From the NCBI GenBank assembly GCA_946965045.2, contig OX337239.1, positions 1,798,001-1,862,000 of the forward strand: DNA of 64,000 nt, given 5' to 3'. Under the pieces are notes generated by a model that worked only from the letters and a program-made list of their open reading frames with translations, did no database searches and was not told where the DNA came from. Origin of the DNA: Epithemia pelagica (taxonomy: Eukaryota > Protista > Bacillariophyta). Positions 1-5,919 of the stretch are shown one piece after another. The stretch's first letter is position 1, and each line of letters starts with the position of its first letter. Position numbers and translations under genes: made by a program.

Positions 1-114
1 TCGCCCTTGAGTGAAGCTATATAGTTAAATAAGATGAGATAAGAAACGAAATGATTCGTTTCATGTCAAGAGAGCGTGGATGAAAACGCACGCAGAACGA
101 AAAGGTGTACCTGG

Positions 115-3100
115 CTATGGCACCGAAAGGGACATGCGGATCATGTATTTCTCAATGGAGGATTGCTGAAAGTGCAGAATACGAAAAAAACGTTTGACTC
201 CGCGAGAGCCTTCAGAACGTTCCAGTTGAATTAAGGAGGTGGACAAAATCAGTTGACTCAGGCGCTCCGTCACAAGCTCCAGCGTGGCCTGTTGGGCTTC
301 AAAAAGTAGCAAACGAAATCTGTCTTCCTCTTGAATACTAGGTTCGACCTTGTCCTCGTCATTGAACGAACTACTATCCTCCGGTTGCCCAGTCCCTGTT
401 TGGGCCCATCGAGCAATGTATGAATTCTTCAGGAAATTTCTTGATCGGGCAAGAATAAGGACGCACGATTCCAAGCTTTCAATAACCTCCTCACTTGTAT
501 AACCAATTCGGTCCCACCACAAGGACAAGTGTTCATCTTCAGTGCCTCTACTACCAAGCTGTTTTGCTCTGCCCCTAAGGAACAGCTCTGCTTCGTCGTG
601 CGCTTGATACCGATCCAGAAAAAAGAGAGCGCGTCGTTCCCTTTCATTTTCGGCGGAAGAAACAGGGTCGTAGTGATTGCATGTGTGCGGTTCGTTGTGC
701 GACATGAGGGGAGACAAGCAAAGCCAGCAATAGTCGGTCCCACACTGTGTGCATTTCATATGGTTGCATCCTTCATTCTTTTCCACTGGCACTTGACATG
801 TGGGGCAGGGCTTGGAATTCTTTTGGATCCAAAAGGAAGATTGTGCCACAACTTGGTTCCACATTTGCAACTCATCGCAAGCCGCGGGAAGGTGAGGTTG
901 TTCTCCACAGCCAAAGCAAAAGGATGTCTCACACCTAGAGCATACCACATTCAATGATTTTTCCTTGTTGTGTGTTGCTGAATGGATAATCATTGTACAA
1001 TCGGGCCCAGGACATTGTCGATGGCAGTCATCCATTTCCACAAATTGTGCCAAGAGCGACTGGTTCCATGACATAGACAAATCTGTTCTATCCAGAGCCC
1101 GCAATGTTCGTGGCCCTATGCGCATGTTACAGTTATGTTGTGGACACGTTGCCCGTATCAGTGGCATTTCCTGATGTGCGGCATCCAAATACGAGTGCCA
1201 ACATGGTCGGCAAAATCGATGTTGACAACCCGGATGGGCGAAAGTGTCGTGGAAAGAAAATTCGTCACAACAAACTTGACATTGGAACATGACGGGCTCC
1301 TTACTGTCATCGTTGAAGTTTGTTTCCACATCTTGTTCAGGAGATATCATGATTCCAGAAGTTTCAAGAATCCTTTGAGGATCTCTGGTCAATACTTGGG
1401 TAGTAACTCGGTGTTGATCAAACCGGTACGCCGACAAGAGCAACAAACAAGTTTCCTCGGACAGGGGTAATGGGAAGCCTTGTTGCATTGCCTTTGTTCG
1501 TTCATGTAGTTTCTCTTCTAACCCCTTTAGTCCTCCGAAAGAGTCCATATCAAAAAACCTGAATGAATTATCCCGCGAGTTTCGTTGCCGATGTTCCCCA
1601 ATCCCCTTGTCATCAGAACCACCAAGGCCTCGGCATACTCGTTTGGCATCTCGTTGTACATTTTCATCCTCCCCAATGTCTTCTTCTTTTTCCGACGTCA
1701 TTGTTTGACTGGTACCATAGGCTAAGAAGCTGCAAATGTGAAAGGCCGCTTCTGGATCAACTGGTGCCACGAGAACTTCACACCATTGAATCACGGCGTG
1801 TAATGCCGATGCCACTGGCAGCTCGGTCATGGCCGCAACACTCAACAACGTAGGGAGCAGGGGTGCCAGGAAAGCTTCCCTCTCCTTCTTGCTAGCACTC
1901 ACATGTTGTGGAGAAGACAATACCCGTTGAAAAATCTCCAAGAGCACCGTTAGAGTTTCCTGCAAAGTCTCCTGTAGGTCTTGATGTTGTTCAAAAGTGG
2001 CACATTGAAATAATAGTTTGGCAAGGTCAAACAACCGTGAAGAAGAACTAAGTGATGACCGCGATGATACATGTGTGGCATTGGCAACATGATGACCCAC
2101 GTGGGCAATGATGCCATAGGCCAATTTGCGAGACTCCCGAGACGATTGCGAGTGCAACTTTTGCTGCAATTGTCTTGTACGGTGTCGTGCAAGCAACCGA
2201 TTGAGATCGTTACGACGATGCGAGGCCATTGGGACTCCTAATGGCACTGCTTCCTCTTCTCCTTGTCCTGGGCGTGCAAATGCAGCCATTCCTTCGTTGG
2301 CTTTGCTTTGTGGAATGGTCAGAAGCACAGATTGGGAAATTTCCATGCATTGCTCAAAGAAATCAGTCTTCCAATCTTCCCCCATAGTATCCCCACACGA
2401 TGACCACGCGACGCTCTTGTAGTTTGATATGGAGGGTCGTGAAATAGCATCCTTGCCATTAACTCCCGTCACAATAGGAGAAGAAGAAGATGTGCTTATC
2501 ATGTTGGCCAATGGGTGAATCAGGTGCAAGGCCCAATAAACATTGACTTGTCGAATGGCAGCCACCAGCCGTACGAGCAAGCGTGAGACAAAGGACGAGT
2601 ACTCATTCTTGCTGTATGTCGTCCGTTCAGTGTCTGGAGACGACTGCTTCTGTTCTGGTATAAAAAGATTGGATGACGACAAGCGTTGTTGGAGGTATTG
2701 AATGGCTCGGGCCGCCATGGATGGAGAGACCGACATACGAGACAACGTGGATGGACCAAGGGTTTCCATTCCTTGATGATTGTTGAATGGAGCTGTGGCA
2801 ATGGTCCCCAAGATGAGATTCCATCCAATGCAATCGACCCATCCATCCAAGACCGAATCTAACGTGGTGGCCGCCCAACCCGTCTCATGGTGTGGTGTTG
2901 ACGTGCCCAGTTTGGACTGTGCCTCGCTCCTCTGGACAGAGGGCATGCTTCTTGGCTCCATCGTGGCAGCGGTTACCGTTTCTCGTAGGACCGTCATGGC
3001 GCGATGGTCTCCTAGAATCAGACGAAACAAAGCCCACACAAGAGGGAGGGTTTTCCCTTCGTGAGATTGTTCTTGTTGTTCCAACCAGGAATCCGCAATT

Positions 3101-4554
3101 TTGCCGTGTACAGTTTCGTGAGAATGGGATGTGACAATGGCCAATAGAAAAGCTTGCAAGAGGGGAAGTGTCTGTAAGGCATGTTGTAGGACTTTGGCCT
3201 TCCATTGTCGCCAAACAATGACCCGCTCGCTAGAACGTTGACTGTGGGCAGCAGCATGAATATGATTGGGTACTTTTTGTAGTCGATCCAATCCATGGCG
3301 CGACAAACCCGTGGATGAATGGTTCGCGAGCGTATAGTAGTCCGCATCGGGTTGATACAAGATAAAATCCATCCAAAGATGAAAGGTTCCACGGGGAAAC
3401 TCAGGTTCCCCAGCGGTAATTGTTGTGGTTGGTGGATCCCTTTGGTTCCTGGTGGTAAGTGTTTTGGGTGTCGTCCTCGTGGTGTTGCCGGCCCCCAGAA
3501 AAGAGGACGGAAGAGGCTTGACACTGCGAGTGCGACTGGGTGAATCATTGTCGGTTGTGGTATTCTTCAGAATTAAGAGTTGATCCAACAGGAGCCATCC
3601 AATCATTCGATCTTGTCCTTGTGCTAGCTCCCATTGTTGTTGAAGTGTCTGCAATGGAGGTTGTTCCTGGTGGTCGAGTCGAAGCGTCGGATTGACAAGA
3701 AGAGTTTCTTCAGGTTCTTCTTGCTGTTGCTGTTTCAGTATTCGTTGTTCTAGATCTTGAAGAGTGAAATAATGATTATTCTGAAATTGTTCGAGGTGGT
3801 CCATCAACAACTCGTGATGCGGTGTCAAAGACGAATCTATCAATGGCGTACTGTTGGATTTGGACGGATCCATCGGGTGAGGGGATTGAGGATATGACTT
3901 GGATGTTTGCGGTGGATGAGTACGATTCCACAAGTGCCGTAGATGAAAGCCAGCTTGCAAAAGTGTGAGTGTCATGGTTTGTGCCAAGGTAGTTTTCAAA
4001 TCTGGTAAGACACTGGCAACGGATTGAATCCACGAATGTGGTGGCACAGACACATGAGTTGTTACTGGGTCTTTCGTTGAGGATTCATTTTGGTATCGAG
4101 CAATGGCCAATCGAATCCGTTCCAAACAGTGAGATAAAATCCCCGTCAAATGAACTTGAATTTCACGATACATCGACTCTTGAGAAGGTTCCAAGTATGA
4201 CGAAGACGACAAGGTCAGGGTATTGTCATCCAACCGTCTCAACAAACGAGGGATCAATCCAGTCATGACCTGTTGCAGACGATCCAAATCGTCCAAGGGA
4301 ATTTGATGGGCCAAACGATTTCGGACACGAATCAAAGACGATACCGTCGCTTTCGCTTCTGTATCTGAGGTGTTTCTCGGCTTGTCCGGATCATCTCTCT
4401 CTTCTTTGTCACATCCTTCTTGTCTTTCGGGACGAGACGGATCCATGGATGTGGGAAGAACATTCTCCTCGTGACGGTTCCATGTTGTCGACGGCTTCAT
4501 GGTCGTTCTCAATCTTTTGGAGAGTGGAAGATGGGGTATTTTCTGCACCGCCAA
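115..4554 (-). CDS. Ecm29-like N-terminal HEAT region fused to Ariadne-type RBR E3 ubiquitin ligase
   Basis: Single 1479-aa ORF. The C-terminus has RING1 (CQVCCD..C.H.FC..CW..CP), IBR (CPGPDC..CSRC..FC..C..PH.P..C), RING2 ([25 protein letters not shown]) and an Ariadne-like helical tail. The N-terminus resembles Ecm29 by recalled alignment ([24 protein letters not shown]; [10 protein letters not shown]; RKLAYGII). Confidence 0.85.
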
Positions 4555-4586
4555 TCATTAGCTTTTGGGTCCCGTTTTATGGAGCA

Positions 4587-4594
4587 TGACGTCA
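4587..4594. promoter_or_regulatory. TGACGTCA palindrome (CRE/bZIP-type site)
   Basis: Perfect 8-bp palindrome about 33 bp upstream of the RBR start codon, in a divergent intergenic region. Function is inferred. Confidence 0.3.
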
Positions 4595-5025
4595 CAAGAG
4601 CGTGACCGGTCGCGCTTGGGACGGTCATCGCATCGGTCATTGCGCCTTATGGGTTTGGGGGATGTCTCTTGGGTCTTGTCAAGACCAAGTTCGCCGTGAA
4701 ATACTCGTAGACGGGCGATGGCAATCCAAACTATAGTTTCATCCCAATTTGTAAATCCATTGGGGAACGATATCGATTGGGAGGATCGAACATTGTATCC
4801 TCTTATCCATCGAGCAAACATCCAAGTCATTCTCTGGTTGCAGAGGCTCGAAGTGAGTGGTCGTTTGTTTCAGGCTACCTATATATCATCGAAAGAAGAA
4901 GTTCAGCAACGGCAATCGTTCTGAAAGCCTTCTTCTTTGCGCACTCCAAGTCTTGGATCTAATTACAAACTACAAGCTTGAGACCTCTCGTGTGTCGGTC
5001 GGTCCCCCTTTGTTAGCAAGTCCAG

Positions 5026-5919
5026 TTGAAAAGTTATCCAAAAATGAGTAATTACGAAAACAAGTTGGCCTTGAACGCCGAAATTGTGGATCAGGGCCAT
5101 TCGGACGATGCGTCGGTGCGTGATTTGCCCAACAATGTCAGGGGTGGTGGAGTCATTCACAAGCCAGGCAGTCAGTTCCGAACCCAAACCGTAAATGCGA
5201 CACAGACGGAATGGAACATTGGCATGGCCGGTGGTGCTGGTCCGGGCGGCAGTTTTCAAGAAATGTGGCCCGAACACTTGCCCCGTCCGCCCTCTCGTCG
5301 CCGATTGCTAGACGAAGACGAAGCCAGTACAAGCAAAGGCGGTAGCGGTGGTGGTGGTCCACGTGTCATTGTCTTTAACGCCAATACGTACGAAGGATCC
5401 TCCATTGTTCGTGTCTTGGCCAATAAGGGCCTCAAGGTTGTAGCCGTCGTTCGTGTCCTTGTCAATCGCAATACCAAACGATTGACCAAACTCAAGAATG
5501 TGACCGTCAAGGTGGCCGATTTGAACAATATGGATGGTGTCATGGCGGCCGCCGAAGGATGTTCGTCGGCATTTTTGGTGACCAAATATTGGGAACGGTT
5601 CGAATCGCCCATTGAAGAAAACATGGCGCAGGTCGTCTTGCGAGCCTCGGCCGCTGTGGGGATTCAACGATTAATGTTGGCCACCTTTGAAGATACGGCC
5701 GGCTTGCGACGTCGCAATCGCAAGTCGCAACTCATCCCTACAGTCGATGGCCGTATCTTTCCCAAGTTTGAAGGCATGAATGCCATACAGCATTTGGCAC
5801 AAGAATTGGAGATTTCCGTCCAGCACATGTTCACCTCCTACTTTGACGATGGTGATAAGAAACGATCTCTAATCCTCATTCGGGGAGCCAATCAACGAAT
5901 TGTTGTACAAGATGGATAA
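5026..5919 (+). CDS. NmrA-like Rossmann-fold protein with degenerate dinucleotide-binding motif
   Basis: 297-aa ORF. RVIVFNANTYEGSSIVRVL..V.AVVR..VKVADL..AAEG...AFLVTKYWE matches the NmrA/HSCARG N-terminal half. Confidence 0.75.
   Translation: MKSYPKMSNYENKLALNAEIVDQGHSDDASVRDLPNNVRGGGVIHKPGSQFRTQTVNATQTEWNIGMAGGAGPGGSFQEMWPEHLPRPPSRRRLLDEDEASTSKGGSGGGGPRVIVFNANTYEGSSIVRVLANKGLKVVAVVRVLVNRNTKRLTKLKNVTVKVADLNNMDGVMAAAEGCSSAFLVTKYWERFESPIEENMAQVVLRASAAVGIQRLMLATFEDTAGLRRRNRKSQLIPTVDGRIFPKFEGMNAIQHLAQELEISVQHMFTSYFDDGDKKRSLILIRGANQRIVVQDG

Follow-up and report, generated by a model that had tools for sequence, protein, structure and literature searches.

Ariadne ligases, Ecm29 and the Epithemia pelagica locus

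ARIH1 (HHARI) and ARIH2 (TRIAD1) are Ariadne-type RING-between-RING (RBR) ubiquitin ligases in which a short acidic or Gly-rich N-terminus leads into a UBA-like region, RING1, IBR, RING2 (Rcat) and an Ariadne domain. In ARIH1, RING1 binds the ubiquitin-charged E2 (E2~Ub), the catalytic cysteine carries ubiquitin as a thioester, and the Ariadne domain gates activity. This study concerns a gene in a 64,000-nucleotide stretch of the genome of the diatom Epithemia pelagica (assembly GCA_946965045.2, contig OX337239.1, positions 1,798,001 to 1,862,000; hereafter the window). From RING1 onwards its protein keeps the ARIH1/ARIH2 domain order, the cysteine of the GCNHM motif and all zinc ligands, whereas the short N-terminus is replaced by about 1000 residues of solenoid ahead of a putative UBA-like region, which profile comparisons identify as the N-terminal domain of Ecm29.

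Large N-terminal interaction modules in front of an Ariadne RBR cassette have precedents in ANKIB1 and CUL9 (PARC). The module consists of ankyrin repeats in ANKIB1 and of a cullin/DOC/CPH assembly in CUL9; neither is Ecm29, and both proteins are from animals. ANKIB1 tails align with the Ariadne tail of the diatom family, and CUL9 is among the PDB sequence matches of the window protein.

Ecm29 (ECPAS), a proteasome adaptor and scaffold for quality control, binds and regulates 26S proteasomes. Its N-terminal domain is homologous to the fusion over the whole ECM29_N profile, but the remaining ~1500 residues of canonical diatom Ecm29, including HEAT_ECM29 (PF24492), are absent from the fusion; conversely, canonical Ecm29 lacks a catalytic domain, whereas the fusion carries the RBR cassette. 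Hul5 and UBE3C are proteasome-associated E3/E4 ligases of the HECT type, with a different way of docking. They have no sequence relationship to the diatom fusion; if the fusion does dock there, all would follow one logic, in which a ligase held at the proteasome acts on bound substrates or on the proteasome as such.

Literature searches on Ecm29 with RBR or Ariadne proteins, Ecm29 in diatoms, Ecm29 truncations and diatom RBR/Ariadne proteins found no description of an ECM29_N plus Ariadne RBR architecture, in agreement with the first-pass annotation of this DNA, which knew of none. Database names within the family ('ariadne-1', 'IBR domain-containing protein 1', 'hypothetical protein') leave the Ecm29 part unnoticed.

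An ECM29_N domain joined to an Ariadne RBR cassette

The gene is a single stop-free open reading frame (ORF) of 1479 residues on the minus strand, and no intron is required to read the whole frame (Table 1). The first-pass annotation, made from the sequence alone, had described an intron-free ORF joining helical repeats to a complete RING1-IBR-RING2-Ariadne module with a GCNHM cysteine; the ORF listing, Pfam, the ARIH1 match and AlphaFold2 bear this out. It had also likened several sequence blocks to the Ecm29 N-terminus. All of its quoted motifs occur where expected, namely RVRNRLAH (residues 76-83), LIPRLLRRL (100-108), [10 protein letters not shown] (139-148), WMDFILYQP (394-402), TGLS (415-418), RKLAYGII (809-816), [12 protein letters not shown] (864-875), VQRDAKRVC (966-974) and GCNHM (1262-1266).

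The proposed relationship to Ecm29 was upheld by family profiles. These comprised a profile from the three Epithemia-type N-termini only (A1), a 48-sequence alignment of fusion N-domains with the window protein first (A2) and an alignment of nine N-termini of RBR-less Ecm29 proteins (A3). Compared by hhalign, A2 and A3 align collinearly over 651 columns (query columns 11-729 of 783) with probability 100% and E 7.5e-47. A hidden Markov model (HMM) built from A2 matches full-length diatom Ecm29 proteins of 2238-2397 residues, with E values between 1e-29 and 6e-54 on a scale of 1.84e9 sequences. Its targets include a Nitzschia inconspicua 'proteasome stabiliser' and proteins of Pseudo-nitzschia, Cyclotella cryptica and Odontella, and the match always spans the first ~730-850 residues. 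An exhaustive search of 1.84 billion representatives with A1 yielded 77 matches, among them fusion proteins and RBR-less proteins. The RBR-less matches include P0089 (E 3e-11), P0095 (E 3e-10), P0111 and P0090 (E 4.4e-11), the last with a Pfam match to ECM29_N positions 37-488 at E 1.6e-23; P0113 (E 7.7e-4) is a 2397-residue Odontella aurita protein with ECM29_N and HEAT_ECM29, that is, a canonical Ecm29. Even the window sequence alone matches P0090, at E 1.9e-6 on the same scale of 1.84e9.

Comparisons within the family give a concordant picture. Searched alone, window residues 19-1035 align in collinear order with every one of the 44 family members (E 1e-94 to 5e-7). ECM29_N is matched by 22 of 48 family N-termini at E 0.01 or better, lies above its gathering score in seven of the eight relatives tested with hmmscan, and is precomputed as PF13001 in 8 of the ~45 fusion-type proteins. 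The ECM29_N pieces found in relatives are collinear, with profile positions 3-116 at the N-terminal end, 162-244 in the middle and 371-495 right before the RBR.

On this profile evidence, the N-terminal part is homologous to ECM29_N in its entirety, and the fused part is about the first third of a ~2300-residue diatom Ecm29. The 'Ecm29 half' of the first-pass annotation was therefore correct in its homology and too large in its extent, which amounts to ~730-850 of those residues. HEAT_ECM29 and the later repeats are absent, and the RBR cassette comes straight after ECM29_N; since the long C-terminal HEAT array typical of Ecm29, a protein of ~1800-2400 residues, is missing, the fusion protein is a paralogous fragment and not an Ecm29 orthologue.

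Searches with the window N-terminus itself reached less far. A word search with residues 1-1030 yielded no more than three close relatives: P0001, an allele at 99%; P0002, with 40% identity; and P0003 (Epithemia clementina ACA910_002123), a 1740-residue protein with the same fusion. The wider family was reached through a search with the RBR half, in which long proteins were allowed, and through the exhaustive profile search. Searching the PDB with the N-terminus, by sequence and by profile, gave noise only and matched no solved Ecm29 chain, and an ESM Atlas feature search with the N-terminal half gave weak, generic solenoid families only, all at 0.83 or below.

From the 48-sequence alignment, AlphaFold2 predicts an all-helical solenoid for the ~1000 N-terminal residues, with a predicted local distance difference test (pLDDT) score of 78 and a predicted template modelling score of 0.79. 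A model from a 3-sequence alignment (pLDDT 44) was unusable. Low-confidence loops coincide with low-complexity insertions of the window protein (residues roughly 213-300, 334-382, 530-610, 690-720 and 759-771), owing to which its domain measures ~950 residues versus ~700 in most relatives. A fold search of the pLDDT 78 model against the atlas and the PDB returned generic HEAT/ARM solenoids only, such as karyopherins, CAND1 and Blm10, with no solved Ecm29 chain among the listed matches. The fold search, which the first-pass annotation had advised, is not discriminating for the identity of this modelled domain.

The C-terminal half was placed by alignment to known structures. With phmmer against all PDB chains, residues 1036-1359 align with ARIH1 131-463 (E 1e-37), and the next matches are ARIH2 (E 1e-32) and CUL9 (E 8e-21), all of them Ariadne-subfamily RBRs. 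The alignment opens within the UBA-like region, whose earlier part is unaligned. Pfam finds RING1 weakly (residues 1091-1127, E 2e-4), IBR (PF01485) across the segment given in Table 1, and IBR_1 and IBR_2 at residues 1243-1286. The zinc ligands of RING1, IBR and RING2 are all conserved relative to ARIH1, and [11 protein letters not shown] pairs with ARIH1 EKDGGCNHMVC, placing the catalytic residue at Cys1263, followed by His1265. The Pfam Ariadne model PF19422 has no match in the tail of the window protein and reaches sub-threshold scores in 2 relatives only. A profile of 41 family tails does match insect ANKIB1 Ariadne tails by hhalign (probability 97.4%, E 1.5e-11). Judged from the ARIH1 alignment together with this tail comparison, the C-terminal RBR-Ariadne cassette of ~450 residues is complete.

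Distribution of the fusion and of canonical Ecm29

Searching with the RBR half recovered about 45 proteins of 1100-1400 residues with the same C-terminal cassette, including the Seminavis robusta 'IBR domain-containing protein 1', a Bacillariaceae protein from a metagenome-assembled genome and MMETSP transcripts. Named carriers are the centric Ditylum and the pennates Seminavis, Epithemia and Bacillariaceae, and the presence of both groups argues that the fusion is old within diatoms. The fusion is not peculiar to the Epithemia pelagica genome and forms a diatom family; most metagenomic members of the family came without a taxon name in their clusters. The first-pass annotation had also advised asking whether a separate full-length ECM29 exists. 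Full-length Ecm29, with ECM29_N and HEAT_ECM29, is found in Nitzschia, Pseudo-nitzschia, Cyclotella, Attheya and Odontella, so the fusion is an extra paralogue and not a replacement. A search with P0090 yielded about 100 Ecm29 proteins, and those that carry names are all from diatoms.

Annotation of canonical Ecm29 is uneven. The Odontella aurita protein P0113 (UniRef A0A7S4MII8) is labelled 'Non-specific serine/threonine protein kinase' in UniRef, probably a misannotation. In two metagenome contigs (L003, 6407-13698; L004, 9001-16314) the canonical gene is split by prokaryote-style gene calling into 2-3 consecutive ORFs corresponding to ECM29_N, HEAT_ECM29 and the tail. It follows that 'ECM29' database entries of ~1200 residues are fragments (first exons or ORF pieces).

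Proposed function and alternative explanations

The reading regarded here as probable is that, in this diatom family, a duplicated ECM29_N stands where an Ariadne RBR would have its short acidic N-terminus and docks the ligase, likeliest at the 26S proteasome. The RBR half would work as in ARIH1: RING1 would bind E2~Ub, ubiquitin would be moved as a thioester onto Cys1263, and the autoinhibitory Ariadne domain would gate activity. The solenoid would serve as a docking module that takes the ligase to the partners of the Ecm29 N-terminus, the likeliest being the base/core interface of the 26S proteasome; the targets of ubiquitylation there would be subunits of the proteasome or proteins bound to it. 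The ORF translation has no signal-peptide-like stretch in its N-terminus, which fits a cytosolic or nuclear location.

Published work on Ecm29 provides the basis for the docking step. The N-terminal region of mouse Ecm29 is required for maximal pull-down of Rpt1, and likewise of ankyrin G and motor proteins (PMC7041676). Ecm29 makes contact with Rpt5 and with the tail of alpha7 in its phosphorylated form (PMC4908598), and it cross-links to Rpt5 and alpha6 (PMC12663562). Taken alone, and by analogy, docking of the solenoid at the proteasome is the leading hypothesis, plausible while falling short of probable.

Several observations weigh against the proposed reading and are set out below with the alternatives on which they bear. 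The window protein and the three Epithemia-type N-termini have no Ecm29 match in Pfam at E up to 10, the window N-terminus being too diverged for Pfam. The first-pass annotation had named the lack of a significant Ecm29 hit as grounds for rejection; read literally, that condition would narrowly have led to rejection of the Ecm29 relationship, as Pfam found IBR in the C-terminus and no Ecm29 in the window protein, the homology emerging through family profiles only. The gene is, moreover, found in no run recorded as RNA. Both points would suit an artefact, either two genes joined by mis-assembly or a chance likeness of helical repeats to Ecm29. Against this stand the collinear 651-column profile alignment, the same fusion in about 45 proteins, complete transcriptome ORFs among them, and read-derived contigs that bridge the junction. 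An artefact is accordingly a vanishingly small prospect, and one already refuted.

The contigs in question come from Logan assemblies of three runs in one study, and all are collinear over the junction (1400-1750) without joints: X1 covers 1051-3795, X2 covers 1-3795 and X3 covers 1-3880. The same fused ORF is present in MMETSP transcripts of other diatoms, namely P0037 ('type:complete'), P0140 (a Ditylum brightwellii cluster) and P0146. For the junction, which the first-pass annotation had asked to be checked, both lines agree with the conclusion that the ORF is not an assembly chimera. X1 and X2 have the appearance of genome assemblies; a fourth run, X4, looks like Hi-C, its contigs showing GATC loose ends. 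X3, with 39 Mb of contigs, has a depth of 307 on the gene, 0 on the intergenic interval 4489-4862 and ~2500 on the neighbouring gene, a pattern from which we infer that it is RNA-derived.

That neighbour, an NmrA-like NAD(P)-binding gene (window 5026-5919, plus strand), lies upstream of the fusion gene in divergent orientation. The arrangement is kept in two related assemblies, L001 and L002. In X3 its contig depth is roughly 8-fold above that of the ligase gene, and the shared intergenic region is at zero.

The start of the fusion ORF lies towards this side. The listed TTG start is a mechanical choice; the earliest ATGs are codon 19 (4498-4500) and codon 37 (4444-4446), and the true start is likely one of these two. 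The contigs of X3 terminate at 4453, slightly upstream of Met37, and a near-identical allele carries a 10-bp indel that is placed upstream of codon 19.

A further set of contrary observations concerns the integrity of the gene. L002 (5100-9900), a haplotype or strain whose DNA is 97.7% identical, carries two lesions: codon 223 is a stop, and one base pair is deleted at codon 1377 (Table 1). Independent contigs repeat these lesions, the deletion in X1 and X2 and the stop in X2. The frame at 423 is intact in the X3 and X4 contigs, and the window frame is taken as ancestral because it is conserved with E. clementina up to the C-terminus. L001 (ENA ERZ25042306) stems from a related species and is a more distant relative; its orthologue is shifted in frame by 1 bp at two places, ~9006 and ~9735. 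One falls at the junction of ECM29_N and the UBA-like region (T3 versus the expected T4) and the other two codons before the catalytic Cys. Beyond both, the frames are open and conserved; the shifts may stem from errors of assembly or from very recent pseudogenisation. Between the two alleles the ratio of nonsynonymous to synonymous substitution rates (dN/dS) in the N-terminal half is ~0.46, from as few as 29 nonsynonymous and 19 synonymous changes. Since loss-of-function alleles segregate beside the intact window allele, constraint on the gene appears weak in the Epithemia pelagica lineage. Over the 5' coding part of the gene (window 3766-4500), the genome-like X1 and X2 runs fall apart into contigs of 100-180 bp at about half depth, a pattern typical of two haplotypes that have diverged across the low-complexity N-terminal region.

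These lesions and the dN/dS value, together with an N-domain that is loop-expanded in this clade and escapes Pfam, are what would be expected if the locus were being lost in Epithemia pelagica, with the intact window ORF as the last functional or a just-inactivated allele with no current role. We consider this improbable. A stop-free ORF of 4.4 kb would not survive neutral decay, the frame agrees with that of E. clementina right up to the end of the protein, and the catalytic and zinc residues are all intact; the seemingly RNA-derived X3 contigs cover the gene with an intact frame at 423, and the L001 frameshifts could be assembly errors.

The choice of docking partner is the remaining point of weakness. 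In the literature examined, no residue-level map shows where Ecm29 meets the proteasome, and ankyrin G, Arp1 and KIF5B are likewise bound by the N-terminal region of mammalian Ecm29 (PMC7041676), so the solenoid could have another partner. It may have taken on a new role away from the proteasome, as a receptor for substrates or for localisation, for example for a cytoskeletal or membrane partner, which would make the protein a substrate-specific Ariadne ligase with a borrowed scaffold, like ANKIB1. The fusion N-domains, only 20-30% identical among themselves and diverging faster than canonical Ecm29, would agree with such a change of role, as would the generic HEAT/ARM matches of the fold search. 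However, blocks common to the fusion family and canonical Ecm29 occur along the whole domain, suggesting a kept fold and possibly kept contacts, and nothing points to any specific alternative partner. Re-use off the proteasome is rated as unlikely, if less so than loss of the gene.

Within the proteasome-docking reading, a more specific and doubtful proposal is that Ecm29_N holds the Ariadne ligase on faulty or stressed 26S proteasomes. There it would ubiquitylate subunits, leading to disassembly or proteaphagy, or stalled substrates, and would rival canonical Ecm29 for its site.

Table 1. Features of the fusion gene and variants of other alleles, in window coordinates
Feature	Position	Strand	Evidence
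Whole ORF, 1479 codons plus stop (115-117)	115..4554	minus	ORF listing
ECM29_N homologue, residues ~62-982, alpha-solenoid with low-complexity loops	1609..4371	minus	hhalign, family HMM, profile search, AlphaFold2
Linker helix and putative UBA-like region before RING1, residues ~1006-1085, holding the junction of the parental proteins	1300..1539	minus	Start of ARIH1 alignment; model helix 1006-1026
RING1, residues 1091-1142 (CQVC...CQH..C..C...CPQHNC)	1129..1284	minus	Pfam, ARIH1 alignment
IBR, residues 1163-1226	877..1068	minus	Pfam IBR (E 3.2e-14), ARIH1 alignment
RING2/Rcat, residues 1243-1292, catalytic Cys1263 codon at 766-768	679..828	minus	Pfam IBR_1/IBR_2, ARIH1 alignment
Ariadne domain, residues ~1304-1479	118..645	minus	ARIH1 alignment to 463, family-tail hhalign
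Nonsense variant, plus-strand G>A, codon 223 CAA>TAA; not in window allele	3888	minus	L002; X2 contig
1-bp deletion, codon 1377, mid Ariadne domain; not in window allele	423	minus	L002; X1 and X2 contigs

Significance

Knowledge is still sparse both of how cells mark defective proteasomes and of the contacts made by the N-terminal part of Ecm29. The fusion offers a genetically simple handle on these questions, as one polypeptide with one catalytic cysteine that can serve to probe the ECM29_N docking site and what is ubiquitylated there. For Ariadne RBRs, ECM29_N would be a third kind of large targeting module, after the ankyrin repeats of ANKIB1 and the cullin assembly of CUL9. If an Ariadne ligase is indeed stationed on the proteasome by Ecm29_N, the diatom fusion would be a natural 'Rosetta stone', predicting an unrecognised functional link between Ecm29 and Ariadne ligases in other eukaryotes.

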